This document shows positions 25,790-35,552 of a stretch of 64,000 nt of DNA, one piece after another. Every line of letters begins with the position of its first letter. Positions within the stretch are counted from its first letter, which is position 1. The DNA is taken from the sequence record NC_015287.1, one strand, 5' to 3'. A program made the position numbers and the translations under genes. The notes under the pieces were generated by a model, which worked only from the letters and a program-made list of their open reading frames with translations, was not told the DNA's origin and made no database searches.

Positions 25790-25813
25790 AACCCTCCCTA
25801 CGGAGGGTTTTTT
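25790..25813 (+). terminator. Rho-independent terminator after hsp20
   Basis: AACCCTCC-CTAC-GGAGGGTT followed by a T-run. Confidence 0.8.
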
Positions 25814-25816
25814 ATT

Positions 25817-26395
25817 ATGGACATAAGTAACTTCAAGAATAATAGATTATCTGGTTTGACATCGCCATTTGAACCTGTAATATATGATTGCCCATATCAA
25901 GATCAGATTGCAGATCCTCTATTACAATGGATATATGATAGGGCAAACGTTAGAGTAAATGGTGGAGCATTAAAGACAAAGTTCTACACAGGAAAAGATA
26001 GAGATACACCAGAACATACCATATTGATTGATTGGATAGAGAGTTTGGTGGTGGAAGCAGTTCACGGAATGTCTAGGTGGACAAACTCTGCATACAACCA
26101 AAGTTCAGAGTCTTCCAAAAGATTTAACATTGCTGATTATTGGGGTATGTATTATGATGAGGGAGGAGGTGCAGTGTTGCATAATCACTGGCCATATCCC
26201 ATATCATTTGGATACTACCTAAAGACCCCAGAAGGCAGTTCACCATTGATTATAGATGAACAATCAATTCAAGTTACAGAAGGTAGATTAATTTTATTTG
26301 CTGGACATCAACCACATGAGGTTCCAGATTGTGAAGTAACTGGAAGGTGCATGATCGCAGGCAATATTGTGTATAAGGGTGTAACAGACTGGTAA
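25817..26395 (+). CDS. 2OG-Fe(II) oxygenase-like protein (HxH type)
   Basis: LHNHW, distal HEV, RCMIAGN. Confidence 0.75.
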   Translation: MDISNFKNNRLSGLTSPFEPVIYDCPYQDQIADPLLQWIYDRANVRVNGGALKTKFYTGKDRDTPEHTILIDWIESLVVEAVHGMSRWTNSAYNQSSESSKRFNIADYWGMYYDEGGGAVLHNHWPYPISFGYYLKTPEGSSPLIIDEQSIQVTEGRLILFAGHQPHEVPDCEVTGRCMIAGNIVYKGVTDW

Positions 26396-26442
26396 ATGTG
26401 GGAATCCCCTGACAATAAATATTGTTACAGGAGGTAAAGATC

Positions 26443-26619
26443 ATGTTAAAACTTACATGGGAACCAAAAGAAGTTCCAGAATACGATCCAGAAATTCATA
26501 ATCCAGAGAAGGTCTTTGCTCTTCTCTGTTACCGTGGTATCCACTATGCTAAGTGGGTTTGCTTGGATGTTTTCAAATCAGGACCATGGAGATTAAAAAA
26601 TCCTAGAGAAAGGGGATAA
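26443..26619 (+). CDS. Small protein with YRG motif (DUF4278-like, tentative)
   Basis: SD GGAGG, ATAAATA upstream, LCYRGIHY. Confidence 0.6.
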   Translation: MLKLTWEPKEVPEYDPEIHNPEKVFALLCYRGIHYAKWVCLDVFKSGPWRLKNPRERG

Positions 26620-26660
26620 TATATTTTTTCTTTGTTATAGTAGTATTTTGAGAGTTTGGT

Positions 26661-27332
26661 ATGAAAAAATTGATTATGGGTTTGATGGCCGCGGCCTCAT
26701 TATCCATACCAGCACTCGCTGAACCCACCAAAGGATATTACACTATGGATGCCATGGGTTGTATGCTCTTGAAAGAGTGTACAGATGGTGTAGAGCGTAT
26801 CTATTCTTCTGGTGATCTTCGTGCAGCATTTCCTGACTCTGATTGGGATAATGTTGATGATGAATTTGATGAGATCATGGTGGCTTTTAGTCAGATTGGT
26901 GTAGATGTTCATCTTGCAGATGAGAAATATTTCCCAGTAGGACATAGAGGTGTATATCACACTGTAAGTAATCACTTCTATCTCAATAAAACTTATGTGC
27001 ATCGCCCACATGTACTCATGAGTGTTGTTCGTCATGAGGGATGGCACGCCGCACAAGATTGTATGGCAGGGACAATCAAAAATAATATGATTGCGATTAT
27101 CATGGATGAGGAAAAGGTTCCTCAGATCTGGCAAGACATTGCTTCTAATACTTATAGGGCAACACCTCATGCAATCCCTTGGGAGAAAGAAGCCTTTTGG
27201 GCAGGGAAGACTGGTGGTATGACTCTTGAGGCACTTCAATCTTGTGCTCGTGGTAAAATGTGGGAAGACTATGATCCCACTCCTATGACAGAGGAATGGT
27301 TAATTGAAAATGGATATATTCAAAAGGGTTGA
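26661..27332 (+). CDS. Secreted HExxH metallopeptidase-like protein
   Basis: Signal peptide ending PALA; VVRHEGWHAAQDC; downstream WEKEA. Confidence 0.7.
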   Translation: MKKLIMGLMAAASLSIPALAEPTKGYYTMDAMGCMLLKECTDGVERIYSSGDLRAAFPDSDWDNVDDEFDEIMVAFSQIGVDVHLADEKYFPVGHRGVYHTVSNHFYLNKTYVHRPHVLMSVVRHEGWHAAQDCMAGTIKNNMIAIIMDEEKVPQIWQDIASNTYRATPHAIPWEKEAFWAGKTGGMTLEALQSCARGKMWEDYDPTPMTEEWLIENGYIQKG

Positions 27333-27357
27333 CATGATCCCCACTTGATACTATAAT
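27329..27357 (+). promoter_or_regulatory. Consensus sigma70 promoter
   Basis: TTGACA(27329-34)-17 nt-TATAAT(27352-57). Confidence 0.9.
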
Positions 27358-27385
27358 GTATTTGTTGAGTTGACGAACTTAACAT

Positions 27386-27558
27386 GGGAGTGACTGAATA
27401 ACCCTGTTGGAATTAGGCGGGGTAATGTAAATGGTTAGAGGTGGTACTCGCCTTCCCTAAAGGAAGTGAACCCGAACCAAGGGAACCATTGTTGTTATGT
27501 ACTAATTTTCGCTTTAGCGATTCCCATAACTTGAGGGTACGAAGTATTCCCTCCTCCC
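27386..27558 (+). ncRNA. manA-like structured RNA
   Basis: Starts GGGAGTGACTGAATAA, contains AGGTGGT and CTTCC-loop-GGAAG, ends CTCCC. Nested stems AATGGTT/AACCATT, GTTATG/CATAAC, GAGGG/CCCTC. Family recalled, not searched. Confidence 0.6.
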
Positions 27559-27562
27559 CCAT

Positions 27563-27633
27563 GCGGATGTAGTTTAATGGTAAAATACGAGGTTTCCAAC
27601 CTCTTGTCCTCAGTTCGATTCTGAGTATCCGCT
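27563..27633 (+). tRNA. tRNA-Gly(TCC)
   Basis: Acceptor GCGGATG/TATCCGC, anticodon loop TTTCCAA, T-arm CTCAG-TTCGATT-CTGAG; CCA not encoded. Confidence 0.93.
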
Positions 27634-27655
27634 TTGCAAACTATATACTGGTGCA

Positions 27656-27991
27656 ATGACCGTCAAACTGGTACTACTTAAATCTAATGAAGAAGTCATC
27701 GCAGATGTAAAGGAACTTGTTGATGCGGATGACAAACCCATCTTTGTAGTTCTTGAAAACGCTTACTGTTGTAAGTTGGTTGAAGCACCTGTGATGCTTA
27801 CTGAAGGAAAAGAGGAGACTGAAACACAGTACAGTGTGCAATACTATCCTTGGATGCCTTTGTCTGATGAGAAAAAGATATCGATTGATCCTAGCTGGGT
27901 TGTTGCGATAGTAGAACCAAAACCAATGGTCAAACAATCCTACGAGAATAAGATTTATGGAACAGGAAGTAAAGATTCTAGTCCTAGTTAG
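27656..27991 (+). CDS. Conserved hypothetical (Sm-like beta barrel?)
   Basis: KLVLLKS.EEVIADVKE; usual pair before gp43. Confidence 0.75.
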   Translation: MTVKLVLLKSNEEVIADVKELVDADDKPIFVVLENAYCCKLVEAPVMLTEGKEETETQYSVQYYPWMPLSDEKKISIDPSWVVAIVEPKPMVKQSYENKIYGTGSKDSSPS

Positions 27992-28217
27992 TGGAGATGT
28001 CCTAATCTCAGGAGTAGAGGAAGTCGCTGCTGTTGATATAGGAGATCCAAATTGTAAACTGGTATCGCCTTACCAACTAGACGGTGAGGAAATGTCACCT
28101 TGGTTAAAGAAAGTGACAGATGATGTTGAAATTATGATATGTTCTGATAAGATAGTAACATTGGTGGAACCCCACCGAGAACTCATTGATTCGTATTTGA
28201 AACTGGCAACCGCATGA
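27957..28217 (+). CDS. Conserved hypothetical
   Basis: GDPNCKLVSPY, SDKIVTLVEP. Confidence 0.75.
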   Translation: MEQEVKILVLVSGDVLISGVEEVAAVDIGDPNCKLVSPYQLDGEEMSPWLKKVTDDVEIMICSDKIVTLVEPHRELIDSYLKLATA

Positions 28218-30718
28218 AATTCTACACTAATGTTTTCCAGATCGGCAACAGTATGCTGGTCAGAGGATACGACAATGGGAGACATTTTAGTGACAGGGAG
28301 GAGTTTCATCCTACCTTTTATGTGCCTACAAAGAAAAGAAGTAAGTGGAAGACCCTTGATGGTCAACGTGTAGAACCAGTAAAACCTGGCACTATCAAAG
28401 ATTGTAGGGAGTTTATTGACAAATATTCTGCTGTTCAAAACTTCAACATCTATGGTAATGAAAGATATGTCCATCAATATATCTCTGAGAATTACCCAGA
28501 AGATGAGATCAAGTTTGACCTGAGCAAAATTAATCTAATCACCATTGACATCGAGGTTGCCGCAGAGAGTGGATTCCCCGATGTTTTTAATTGTGCAGAA
28601 GAATTACTTCTAATCACCGTACAAGATTACAATACCAAAAGAATTACTACCTTCGGATCACGTCCATACCAGACCAATCCGAACAGAAAGAACTACTCAT
28701 ATATTGACTGCCATAACGAGGAAGGTCTGATCTATACATTCCTAGACTGGTGGCAGAAACACACGCCTGAGGTCATTACAGGGTGGAACTGTGAACTGTA
28801 TGATATCCCTTACCTTGTAGGTAGGGTAGAACGACTTATGGGTGAGAAGATGACTAAGAAGTTCTCTCCTTGGGGTGTGGTTCGTAAGAATGAAATCAAG
28901 ATTGCTGGTCGAGATAATATATCATATGATCTGGCAGGCATCTCTATCATTGACTATCTTGATCTATACAAGAAATCCCCTGCAACTCCTAACCAAGAGA
29001 GTTTCCGATTGGATCATATTGCCATGATGGAACTCGGTCAACAGAAGTTGGATCACAGTGAGTTCGATACATTCCGTGAGTTCTATACAAAGAACTGGCA
29101 GAAGTTTGTAGATTACAACATCGTTGACGTGGAACTGGTTGACCGTCTTGAGGATAAACTCAAGTTGATTGATCTATGTTGTACTCGAGCATATGATGCC
29201 AAGATAAACTTTAGTGACGTTGCTTTCCAAGTTCGTACATGGGATGCAATCATCTACAACTATCTCAAGAAGAAAAATATTGTGATCCCACAAAAGGATC
29301 GTAATAAGAAGGATGAAAAGTATGCTGGTGCGTATGTGAAAGAACCTAAGCCTGGTAAGTATGACTGGGTGGTTTCTTTTGACTTGAACTCACTGTATCC
29401 ACACCTCATCATGCAGTACAATATTTCCCCAGAAACACTACAGGAAAAGAAACATCCTAGTGCCACGGTGGAGAAACTTCTCAATCAAGAGATTACCTTT
29501 GAAATGTACAAGGACTATGCAGTTTGTGCTAATGGTGCAATGTTTAGTAAGGAAAAGAAAGGTTTTCTCCCTGAGTTGATGGAGAAGATGTATAACGAAC
29601 GTGTCATCTTCAAGAAGAGGATGATCAAAGCAAAGAAAGCCTATGAAAAAACCCCTACTAAGGAACTGGAAAAAGAGATTGCAAGATGCAACAACGTCCA
29701 AATGTCCAAGAAGATCGCCCTTAATAGTGCTTATGGCGCTATTGGTAATCAATACTTTCGTTATTACAAACTTGCGAACGCAGAGGCCATCACTCTATCT
29801 GGACAGGTATCAATCCGATGGATTGAGAACAAAATGAATAAAAAAATGAATACTATCTTAAAAACGGAGGATAAAGATTATGTTATTGCTAGTGATACTG
29901 ATTCTATCTATTTGCATATGGGTCCTTTGGTTGACCGTGTATACGAAAGCCGAGAAGCGACTACTGAAAGCATCGTCTCGTTCCTTAATAAGGTGTGTGA
30001 AATGGAACTTGAGCCTTATATTGAGAGTTCTTACCAAGAACTGGCCGAATACGTCAACGCCTACGACCAGAAGATGATCATGAAGCGGGAGAATATCGCT
30101 GATCGTGGTATTTGGACTGCAAAGAAAAGATATATTCTCAACGTATGGGATAGTGAGGGTGTGAGATATGAACAGGCAAAACTTAAGATCATGGGTATTG
30201 AAGCAATCAAAACTTCTACCCCTGCACCATGTCGTAAGTTCTTGAAAGATGCTTTCAAACTTTTGATGTCGGGAACAGAAGATGAAGTGATCGACTATAT
30301 TGAAAAGTGTAGGACAGAGTTTAAATCATTACCACCAGAGGAAGTTGCTTTTCCTCGTAGTCTATCAAATGTAGAGAAATGGAAGTCATCCACAGACATG
30401 TATCACAAGGGATGCCCCATCCATGTTCGTGGTGCAATCTTATATAATCACTACACAAAGAAGAAGAAGTTGACTAATAAATATGCTGCTATTCAAAATG
30501 GTGAGAAGATCAAGTTCTGCTACTTGAAGACACCAAATTGGATGCACGAAAATGTTATATCTTTCATTCAAGATTTCCCAACAGAACTTGACCTAGATAA
30601 ACATATTGACTATGAACTACAGTTCAATAAGTCATTTATGGAACCTGTAAAGGTTATCCTTGATTGCATCGGTTGGGAGACCGAACGCAAGAACACACTT
30701 GAATCATTCTTCTCATGA
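28214..30718 (+). CDS. gp43: Family B DNA polymerase
   Basis: Exonuclease DIE, SFDLNSLYP, KIALNSAYG, ASDTDS; 834 aa, uninterrupted. Confidence 0.98.
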   Translation: MKFYTNVFQIGNSMLVRGYDNGRHFSDREEFHPTFYVPTKKRSKWKTLDGQRVEPVKPGTIKDCREFIDKYSAVQNFNIYGNERYVHQYISENYPEDEIKFDLSKINLITIDIEVAAESGFPDVFNCAEELLLITVQDYNTKRITTFGSRPYQTNPNRKNYSYIDCHNEEGLIYTFLDWWQKHTPEVITGWNCELYDIPYLVGRVERLMGEKMTKKFSPWGVVRKNEIKIAGRDNISYDLAGISIIDYLDLYKKSPATPNQESFRLDHIAMMELGQQKLDHSEFDTFREFYTKNWQKFVDYNIVDVELVDRLEDKLKLIDLCCTRAYDAKINFSDVAFQVRTWDAIIYNYLKKKNIVIPQKDRNKKDEKYAGAYVKEPKPGKYDWVVSFDLNSLYPHLIMQYNISPETLQEKKHPSATVEKLLNQEITFEMYKDYAVCANGAMFSKEKKGFLPELMEKMYNERVIFKKRMIKAKKAYEKTPTKELEKEIARCNNVQMSKKIALNSAYGAIGNQYFRYYKLANAEAITLSGQVSIRWIENKMNKKMNTILKTEDKDYVIASDTDSIYLHMGPLVDRVYESREATTESIVSFLNKVCEMELEPYIESSYQELAEYVNAYDQKMIMKRENIADRGIWTAKKRYILNVWDSEGVRYEQAKLKIMGIEAIKTSTPAPCRKFLKDAFKLLMSGTEDEVIDYIEKCRTEFKSLPPEEVAFPRSLSNVEKWKSSTDMYHKGCPIHVRGAILYNHYTKKKKLTNKYAAIQNGEKIKFCYLKTPNWMHENVISFIQDFPTELDLDKHIDYELQFNKSFMEPVKVILDCIGWETERKNTLESFFS

Positions 30719-33766: not shown

Positions 33767-35148
33767 TTGAAACTATTGAAAATACCATCATCAAGAATCT
33801 TATCTGTAATGAGGAATATACTAGGAAGGTTCTTCCTTTCTTAAAACCAGATTACTTTGACAAAGCACATGAGAAGATAATTTTTGATGAGTGTGCCAAG
33901 TTTATTGTACAGTATGATAAATGTCCTACTATAGAGATTCTTTCTATTGAATGTGAGAAGAGGAAAGATATTAATGATGATACTTACAAAGAAATTCTAG
34001 ATTATCTCAAGCAAACAAGTCAGACTGAAGAGAACGTAGATGATTGGCTGATAGATACTACAGAGAAATGGTGTAAAGAAAGAGCAATCTATCTTGCACT
34101 GGTCGAAAGTATCTCTATTGCAGATGGACATGATATCAAGAAAGGTGTTGATGCTATCCCTGCTATCCTATCAGATGCACTTGCTGTTGGGTTTGATAAT
34201 CATGTTGGACACGATTACCTAGAAGACTATGAGGAGAGATTTGACTTCTACCACAAGAAGGAGGACAGAATCGAGTTTGACCTCGAATTTTTCAACAAGA
34301 TTACAAAGGGTGGCCTTCCAAATAAAACACTCAATATTGCTCTCGCTGGCACTGGTGTTGGTAAGTCTTTGTTTATGTGTCATGTCGCAAGCAGTGTGTT
34401 ACTCCAAGGCAAGAACGTATTATACATCACGCTTGAGATGGCTGAGGAGAAAATTGCTGAGAGAATTGATGCTAATCTTTTAAACATTCCTGTACAACAG
34501 TTGACGGATATTCCTCGTCAGATGTTTGAGAGTAAAGTTACTAAACTATCAGAGAAAACTCAAGGTAGTCTTATCATCAAAGAATATCCTACTGCTGCTG
34601 CACACTCAGGACATTTCAAAGGTTTGTTGAATGAACTTGCACTCAAGAAATCTTTTAAACCACATATCATTTTCATTGACTACTTAAATATATGTGCATC
34701 CTCTCGTTATAGAGCTGGTTCCAATGTCAACTCATATTCCTACATCAAAGCAATCGCTGAAGAACTTAGAGGTCTTGCAGTCGAAACAGATGTCCCTATT
34801 GTATCAGCGACTCAAACCACTCGTAGTGGGTATTCTAACAGTGACGTTGATCTTACAGATACCTCTGAGTCATTCGGTCTTCCCGCTACTGCCGACCTTA
34901 TGTTTGCTCTTATTTCTACAGAAGAATTAGAGGAAGTAAATCAGATCATGGTCAAACAGTTGAAGAATAGATACAATGATCTGAACAGAAACAAGAGATT
35001 TGTGATTGGTATTGATCGTTCAAAGATGAAACTATATGACTGTGACCAGAGTGCTCAGGATGATATAGTTGACAGTGGACAAGAAGAAGAGTATAATAAT
35101 GACGAATCTAAAAAGATTAAAAACAAGTTCGCAAAGTTGACATTCTAA
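33763..35148 (+). CDS. gp41: Replicative DnaB-like helicase
   Basis: AGTGVGKS, IFIDYL, SATQTTR, QLKNRY. Confidence 0.96.
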   Translation: MIETIENTIIKNLICNEEYTRKVLPFLKPDYFDKAHEKIIFDECAKFIVQYDKCPTIEILSIECEKRKDINDDTYKEILDYLKQTSQTEENVDDWLIDTTEKWCKERAIYLALVESISIADGHDIKKGVDAIPAILSDALAVGFDNHVGHDYLEDYEERFDFYHKKEDRIEFDLEFFNKITKGGLPNKTLNIALAGTGVGKSLFMCHVASSVLLQGKNVLYITLEMAEEKIAERIDANLLNIPVQQLTDIPRQMFESKVTKLSEKTQGSLIIKEYPTAAAHSGHFKGLLNELALKKSFKPHIIFIDYLNICASSRYRAGSNVNSYSYIKAIAEELRGLAVETDVPIVSATQTTRSGYSNSDVDLTDTSESFGLPATADLMFALISTEELEEVNQIMVKQLKNRYNDLNRNKRFVIGIDRSKMKLYDCDQSAQDDIVDSGQEEEYNNDESKKIKNKFAKLTF

Positions 35149-35552
35149 TGACTATTGATTTTAAAAGGTACGAAACATTCGTAGATGCCGTAACCTCTGA
35201 CGCTTCAAAGGACTTTGTTAATCTCGCTGACCGTATGGTTGAGTTGGATGGACAGGGTGCGAACATTGAAAGGCTTTTGACCTCTGCGGTTGGTATGTCC
35301 GCCGAAGCTGGTGAGTTCACTGAGATTGTAAAGAAGATGGTGTTTCAAGGAAAACCTTGGAACGGAGCAAACAAACATCATCTTATCACAGAACTGGGTG
35401 ATATCATGTGGTATGTAGCAAATGCTTGTATGGCATTGGATGTATCATTTGATGATGTAATCGCAACCAATGTTAAGAAACTGGAAAAGAGATATCCTGG
35501 CGGTAGTTTTGATGTATTCTATTCCGAGAATAGACAGGAGGGAGACCTCTAA
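35148..35552 (+). CDS. mazG: MazG-type nucleotide pyrophosphohydrolase
   Basis: EAGEF.E.VKK and ELGDIMWY. Confidence 0.92.
   Translation: MTIDFKRYETFVDAVTSDASKDFVNLADRMVELDGQGANIERLLTSAVGMSAEAGEFTEIVKKMVFQGKPWNGANKHHLITELGDIMWYVANACMALDVSFDDVIATNVKKLEKRYPGGSFDVFYSENRQEGDL

Follow-up and report, generated by a model that had tools for sequence, protein, structure and literature searches.

A manA RNA directly before a tRNA-Gly gene in Synechococcus phage S-SSM7, and the recurrence of manA–tRNA junctions in other phages

The manA motif (RF01745) was put forward by Weinberg et al. in 2010 as a riboswitch candidate found in 5′ untranslated regions (UTRs) and is filed as 'Cis-reg' (PMC2864571). 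As late as 2025, papers have continued to class it as a cis-regulator on the strength of its position alone. Here we analyze a copy of manA that lies directly before a tRNA-Gly gene in a 64,000-nucleotide (nt) stretch of sequence record NC_015287.1 (the whole stretch is hereafter the window). Over ~1 kb around this manA, the sequence is 100% identical to Synechococcus phage S-SSM7 (NC_015287 / GU071098), a T4-like marine cyanophage of the family Kyanoviridae with Synechococcus WH8109 as host, and 99.8% identical to Cyanophage S-SSM6a, a near-twin of S-SSM7; window positions correspond to positions in the S-SSM7 record minus 124000. The S-SSM7 copy shares with the described motif its helices, the GGGAGUGACUGAAUAA junction, the CCUCCC closing strand and a T4-like cyanophage as carrier. 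It differs from it in that the next gene is a tRNA, only 4 nt away, and in having no expression platform.

Several other RNAs invite comparison. GOLLD and ROOL are often found near tRNAs, and their discoverers suggested co-transcription as a possible cause (PMC5737381). They resemble the S-SSM7 element in being phage-carried structured RNAs of unknown function that often adjoin tRNAs, but they are much larger (about 580–800 nt) and occur in other phyla, whereas the manA junction is tight (4–18 nt) and lies on the 3′ side of the RNA; we claim no relation. The stable RNAs C and D of phage T4 are small, have no known function, are co-transcribed with tRNAs and are released by tRNA-processing enzymes. 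Here the likeness is that of an RNA travelling with a tRNA in a T4-type phage, and again no homology is claimed: RNAs C and D lie within a cluster of eight tRNAs; manA, by contrast, is transcribed from its own promoter and mostly stands without a tRNA. Finally, in MALAT1/mascRNA and in the tRNA punctuation of mitochondria, an RNA owes its 3′ end to RNase P, which cuts at the tRNA fold lying directly downstream. These systems are eukaryotic or organellar, whereas in S-SSM7 the tRNA is a real and probably functional one and the cleavage is a predicted step.

The element and its immediate surroundings in the window consist of the following features.

27329..27357, plus strand: sigma70-type promoter (host RNA polymerase, early), TTGACA at 27329–27334, 17-nt spacer, TATAAT at 27352–27357; score 12/12
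27364, plus strand: predicted transcription start, G27364, 7th nt downstream of the −10 box and at the foot of P1
27363..27563, plus strand: full match to Rfam manA (RF01745), 123.6 bits, model positions 1–192 of 192
27363..27384, plus strand: P1, the 5′-terminal hairpin of manA, model positions 1–22
27388..27558, plus strand: manA core, 171 nt from the GGGAG to the CTCCC closing strand, with the invariant GGGAGUGACUGAAUAA and five internal helices
27559..27562, plus strand: linker CCAU, 4 nt between the closing helix and the tRNA; putative RNase P cut between U27562 and G27563
27563..27633, plus strand: tRNA-Gly, anticodon UCC, called by ARAGORN and by Rfam RF00005 (62.2 bits versus a cut-off of 29); CCA end not encoded

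The initial annotation of this locus had described a divergent manA-like RNA closed by GGGAG/CTCCC. A cmsearch with RF01745 was strongly positive for manA: the 123.6 bits compare with a gathering score of 55.2 (E = 1e-31), and the GenBank record gives the same result. The word 'divergent' is apt in that the S-SSM7 copy scores below most others, but it overstates the case for a full-length match scoring over twice the gathering threshold. The four defining features tested are all present, namely the whole-model score, the helices, the GGGAGUGACUGAAUAA junction (exact at 27388–27403) and occurrence in a cyanophage or marine setting. The closing helix pairs GGGAG (27388–27392) with CTCCC (27554–27558), and the five stems first listed (AATGGTT/AACCATT, CTTCC/GGAAG, GTTATG/CATAAC, TCGC/GCGA and GAGGG/CCCTC) are all in place and all helices of the Rfam manA consensus. 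Two further consensus helices had been overlooked: P1 (27363–27384) and a hairpin CCCUGU/GCGGGG (27403–27425). The covariance-model alignment also bears out the earlier impression that the stems depart from the manA consensus while still pairing, most of them differing from it on both strands. The unconstrained minimum-energy structure computed with RNAfold for 27364–27562 contains the same helices (−58.4 kcal/mol, z = −2.0), and in a 297-nt precursor manA and the tRNA form separate domains. S-SSM7 groups with S-SSM4, P-RSM1 and two IMG/VR contigs in a lower-scoring subtype (about 120–125 bits), while most phage copies score 170–197 bits. We conclude that the S-SSM7 element is a genuine full-length manA of this lower-scoring subtype, in which pairing has been kept through compensatory changes.

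As first proposed, the tRNA begins 4 nt after the closing helix, and both ARAGORN and Rfam agree that a tRNA rather than an open reading frame (ORF) follows manA. This tRNA-Gly(UCC) has a canonical T-loop and a U at position −1, which is a favoured context for RNase P; GGA accounts for 35% of the Gly codons in the long ORFs of the window. No promoter-like site or terminator was found on the plus strand at 27358–28032, nor any terminator-like site on the plus strand at 25809–29350. Because a 4-nt gap is too short for a promoter and no promoter-like site lies within manA, the tRNA would be transcribed through manA. Maturation of the tRNA needs the 5′ cut by RNase P, and therefore a manA RNA of ~199 nt would be released, the distance from the likely start G27364 up to the tRNA being 199 nt. 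That RNase P severs manA from what follows, as the initial annotation had suggested, is thus a sound inference from the anatomy of the junction; the short gap and the lack of a promoter for the tRNA support it, and the junctions found in other phages strengthen it. The CCAU at the end of such an RNA was considered as a mimic of the CCA end of tRNAs and rejected; other Gly loci have the linkers AACU, ACUU and ACAU.

No intrinsic terminator is predicted between manA and gp43, the DNA polymerase gene further downstream, and the S-SSM7 locus therefore has no riboswitch-type expression platform. By definition a cis-regulatory leader belongs to the 5′ UTR of the protein-coding gene under its control and is adjoined by an expression platform, either a terminator or a sequestered ribosome-binding site; here the next element is the tRNA.

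We scanned IMG/VR for the invariant 16-mer GGGAGTGACTGAATAA and obtained at least 120 loci; the census figures given throughout are those among the matches listed. With phage records added, manA was complete in 109 loci, of which 108 extended far enough on the 3′ side to be classified. The CTCCC partner lay 159–238 nt from the 16-mer in all 110 segments with enough sequence, and the covariance model, applied to 41 loci or records, gave every one a score between 119.6 and 197 bits. Across 782 kb of manA loci, 16 tRNAs were called, and 11 of them, against an expectation of 0.07, begin 4–54 nt downstream of manA in the same orientation (binomial P ~4e-23 for clustering of tRNAs after manA, a value overstated because the loci are related). 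We conclude that the link between manA and tRNAs is not due to chance.

Rfam confirms the tRNAs after manA, including four tRNA-Gly with an unusual T-loop, and two identities occur in this position, Gly-UCC and Asn-GUU. A tRNA-Gly(UCC) follows manA after 4 nt and precedes a DUF6561 ORF in S-SSM7 and in two other loci (L085 and L051). Three more loci (L021, L066 and L114) have manA, a 50-nt hairpin, tRNA-Gly(UCC) and the DUF6561 ORF in that order, and at another (L026) manA and tRNA-Gly stand ahead of a transaldolase gene (talC) in place of the DUF6561 ORF. The tRNA-Asn(GUU) starts 7–18 nt after manA in four loci (L009, L037, L052 and L090) whose flanks are unrelated on both sides; the genes past the tRNA encode, respectively, PurS, a transaldolase, a small ORF and an oxygenase. 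Among the cultured phages in the collection, S-SSM7 and S-SSM6a are the only ones with a manA–tRNA junction. One locus (L115, 1120–1500) has the reverse order: manA, from position 1192, comes immediately after a tRNA-Thr(UGU) whose last nucleotide is 1191, and no promoter separates the two. Past manA come a strong terminator and then a fresh 12/12 promoter, which serves the next gene; the locus resembles a tRNA–manA unit without an attached mRNA.

The tRNA-Gly(UCC) genes after manA in L085, L051, L026, L021, L066 and L114 have the T-loop UGCGAUA or UGCAAUA, versus UUCGAAU, and a D-arm rich in A and U. Four of these genes escape ARAGORN at its default threshold but are recovered by Rfam (52–58 bits) and by ARAGORN with the -ps option; the extra ARAGORN calls at -ps85 (Pyl, '???') were discarded as noise. 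The supplementary alignment of Weinberg et al. (PMC2864571) holds no comment on tRNAs. In the flanks given in its manA.sto file, tRNA-like sequences can be seen by eye on both sides of manA in BABC01000017.1 and after the terminator in JCVI_SCAF_1101668133563. Judging from these by-eye flanks of the 2010 alignment, the link between manA and tRNAs may extend beyond cyanophages.

On the 5′ side, the consensus TTGACA-17-TATAAT promoter reported in the initial annotation is indeed present at 27329–27357, and it is one of only two 12/12 sigma70 sites on both strands of the window, where ~0.02 would be expected by chance. Promoters scoring at least 11/12 lie directly upstream of manA in 96 of 104 other loci (12/12 in 18 of these 96), against 3 of 521 random 80-nt windows drawn from the same loci. 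We conclude that the perfect promoter is a family-wide trait and not a peculiarity of the S-SSM7 locus. For 96 of 101 manA loci, P1 has its first paired base 4–6 nt downstream of the −10 box, and transcription would therefore start at the foot of the 5′-terminal hairpin.

This geometry, together with a promoter that is always strong, could be explained in another way: manA may be a structured 5′ module that protects early transcripts (the pre-tRNA and the operon mRNA) from 5′-end-dependent decay, or that ensures their strong early expression, with no sensing and no role in trans. It is general knowledge that 5′-terminal stem-loops protect bacterial RNAs from RNase E. For such a task, however, a hairpin alone would be enough, and a 170-nt core with invariant junctions and five covarying helices is far more elaborate; moreover, once RNase P had cut the S-SSM7 transcript, the RNA downstream would no longer be protected by manA. 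We regard a purely protective module as improbable.

Two further observations concern promoters. The −35 box TTGACA forms the loop of the terminator hairpin of the upstream gene in many IMG/VR loci (e.g. L004, L006, L012, L016, L021, L025 and L028; 75 nt upstream of manA), and in this fused form, GGAGGGG-TTGACA-CCCTCC followed by a T-run, both functions are held in one compact element. The second 12/12 sigma70 promoter of the window, at 35069–35097, lies within the last 80 nt of a 461-amino-acid (aa) ORF and 50 nt before a 134-aa ORF (35148–35552).

Past the 3′ end of manA, 97 clusters that are non-redundant at 95% identity fall into three groups: a tRNA follows in 11, a terminator-like hairpin with a U-run in 25 (5% of control windows contain terminators) and an ORF directly in 61. 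The downstream ORFs are diverse, comprising gp32, transaldolase, phosphomannomutase, mannose-6-phosphate isomerase, PurS, Hsp20, 2OG-Fe(II) oxygenases, small phrog_878 proteins and DUF6561, and their classes agree with those of Weinberg et al. (PMC2864571). Across these varied contexts, no protein gene is a constant neighbour of manA. There is one manA per record in four complete genomes (177–233 kb) and in 18 contigs of 26–149 kb searched with the covariance model, and BLAST places manA at one position per record in 40 phage records. We found no description of these promoter, start-geometry, copy-number and 3′-context features in the literature searched, and neither the manA–tRNA link nor manA expression data in the open-access literature searched. 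The RNA family itself is already known; what is new is the tRNA junction as a recurrent variant of a family-wide promoter–manA cassette.

Twelve runs recorded as RNA contain at least part of the stretch. We compared four of them, from four studies, over 26400–28800, using assembled contigs, which cannot show RNA ends, strand or level. Run X1 tiles 26793–28227: one of its contigs spans 27499–28065 without differences (the 3′ part of manA, the tRNA and ORF182, the first of two DUF6561 ORFs), and a second reaches from the upstream ORF across the promoter into manA. Runs X2, X3 and X8 match the manA core only (from 27382 or 27386 to 27551 or 27558, with 98–100% identity) and then continue into unrelated flanks, including a different P1. 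In X8, a metatranscriptome, the contig carries this manA core with 3 differences and then a different tRNA after 7 nt. The points at which contigs stop at the core borders were considered as RNA ends and set aside, being most likely assembly breaks where strains diverge. These comparisons show that S-SSM7-like sequence is present in RNA libraries. The S-SSM4 and S-SSM7 cores share 95% identity; for the ORF next to them, identity between these phages reaches about 80% at most. The manA core thus looks like a cassette that is exchanged between phages and is bounded at the closing helix.

We propose that host RNA polymerase initiates at the sigma70 promoter and that the transcript begins at the base of the 5′ hairpin. 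It would then pass through the 171-nt core, 4 nt of linker, tRNA-Gly(UCC), two DUF6561 ORFs and the gp43 DNA polymerase gene. Cutting at the 5′ end of the tRNA, RNase P would free a ~199-nt manA that begins with a triphosphate-bearing hairpin and extends 4 nt beyond its closing helix on the 3′ side; the tRNA of S-SSM7 would in this way be both co-expressed cargo and the signal that forms the 3′ end of manA. In trans, the RNA may bind a factor or a small molecule; alternatively, its action may be limited to the time of transcription. It would not be a classical riboswitch acting on the next ORF. On balance, though with modest confidence, we favour the reading that promoter and manA make up a cassette complete in itself, the RNA of which functions in detached form, as a compact molecule. 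We favour it because manA is present in single copy, has a private promoter and frequently a private terminator, and occurs in a promoter–manA–tRNA unit that moves.

The S-SSM7 manA calls the riboswitch label into question, modestly but concretely, and offers a natural test case in a cultured phage. Should manA prove stable and needed in S-SSM7, the family would work as a detached RNA and the search would shift from ligands to partners; should the tRNA be a mere passenger, the locus would be an ordinary instance of manA with a mis-annotated coding sequence (CDS). The consensus promoter, the flush 5′ hairpin, the single copy per genome and the terminator and tRNA junctions provide experimental handles.

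The main rival holds that manA is a cis-acting leader or riboswitch of the DUF6561–DUF6561–gp43 operon and that the tRNA has been inserted into the 5′ UTR of this operon as a passenger. Such a leader would sense a metabolite or modulate elongation co-transcriptionally (by pausing, Rho or intrinsic termination), and the later RNase P cut would be irrelevant to it. This follows the original assignment (PMC2864571), in which manA was a candidate riboswitch preceding ibpA and genes of mannose/fructose, nucleotide and photosynthesis functions, and the same gene classes stand downstream in our census. The S-SSM7 window itself fits a leader poorly, having no terminator before gp43, no ribosome-binding site within reach and a tRNA 4 nt away. 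Among relatives, manA and the DUF6561 ORF are separated by a 23-nt gap, a hairpin, a tRNA or a hairpin plus tRNA, so that distance and content vary freely; from these variable insertions it would follow that manA function tolerates any spacing, including its severing from the ORF. The promoter–manA–tRNA-Asn unit precedes four unrelated genes, and at two loci (L115 and L080) the manA unit does not lead into an ORF of its own, the ORF of L080 having its own glutamine riboswitch. The literature searched, which runs to 2025, reports no ligand for manA.

A number of observations nonetheless weigh against a detached RNA, several of them in favour of the leader. In three loci (L107, L025 and L008) manA lies 23–26 nt directly ahead of the same DUF6561 ORF with no tRNA, and the tRNA may accordingly be a passenger in a functional 5′ leader. 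A terminator hairpin stands between manA and the ORF in 25 of the 97 loci, and the U-run of many of these terminators abuts the start codon with no new promoter, which gives them the look of an attenuator or riboswitch. The terminator of S-SSM4, the closest relative of the S-SSM7 core, has GGGAG in its 5′ arm, which could compete for the CUCCC of manA; such antiterminator pairing, judged by eye, is plausible for the S-SSM4 type and elsewhere indistinguishable from the generic GAGGG...CCCUC of phage terminators. The tRNA-linked loci are not phylogenetically independent and represent roughly 8 distinct contexts, and variable neighbours are weak evidence where phage genes are tightly packed on one strand. 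The X1 contigs could derive from precursor RNA, read-through or contaminating DNA. Lastly, no manA was found in cyanophage Syn9, and manA is therefore dispensable for some cyanomyoviruses. Weighing both sides, we consider a cis-acting leader in S-SSM7 rather unlikely, and we retain the detached RNA as the preferred reading.

Extended to the whole family, that reading would make manA not a riboswitch but a single-copy, mobile phage RNA gene that combines a consensus early promoter with a compact 200-nt RNA; as a free RNA, manA would act early in infection on a factor of the host or the phage. The 3′ end would be formed by its own terminator in about a quarter of the loci or by tRNA-processing enzymes in about a tenth, and manA would be the cyanophage counterpart of the orphan stable RNAs of T4 or of GOLLD/ROOL. 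We put this generalization forward tentatively, as a possibility that we hold with less confidence than the reading of the cassette itself.

The genes around the element in S-SSM7 are the following.

26661..27332, plus strand: SSSM7_179, the upstream ORF, 223 aa, phrog_591, function unknown
27441..27572, plus strand: SSSM7_180, GenBank CDS, 43 aa, GTG start, contained in manA plus the first 10 nt of the tRNA
27656..27991, plus strand: SSSM7_182 (ORF182), 111 aa, DUF6561-like, phrog_431
27957..28217, plus strand: SSSM7_183 (ORF183), 86 aa, DUF6561, tandem paralog of ORF182
28214..30718, plus strand: gp43 DNA polymerase

At this locus GenBank annotates the tRNA-Gly and the 43-aa SSSM7_180, and the manA RNA is unannotated. 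Taken at face value, the record would mean that the region encodes a protein and that the RNA structure is incidental. An ORF does exist at 27441–27572; it starts with GTG, however, sits within a covariance-supported RNA and overlaps the tRNA by 10 nt, and the compensatory changes in manA keep pairing but alter codons. We rejected SSSM7_180 as a real gene, since it is most likely a spurious call, and find a protein-coding explanation of the region scarcely credible.

The TGA stop codon of SSSM7_179 (27330–27332) falls within the −35 box of the manA promoter, and no terminator precedes manA. The start codon of ORF182 lies 98 nt from manA, on the far side of the tRNA. ORF182 and ORF183 overlap, match DUF6561 with E = 6e-6 and 5e-33, respectively, and lie directly upstream of gp43. 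Ahead of ORF182, the motif CTATATA(A/C)..GATGCAATG is conserved with or without the tRNA present.

Two kinds of element recur after manA in the census. A long conserved hairpin, AGACCUAAGAUGCAACU...GUGGGGCAGAUGGUCU, usually with a U-run, lies 10–55 nt after manA in L017, L082, L093, L098, L112, L055, L059 and L117, and also in L021, L066 and L114, where it precedes the tRNA-Gly and its U-run is weakened; compared with Rfam, it matched no family. At L080, a glutamine riboswitch (RF01739, 37.7 bits) occupies 1194–1242 on the minus strand, 57 nt past manA and just ahead of the small ORF that comes next, and a second copy lies upstream of manA. Three other loci (L039, L091 and L105) show, by eye, the same GUUCAUCC...GCAAGUAAG motif as the glutamine riboswitch of L080, with scores below the cut-off.

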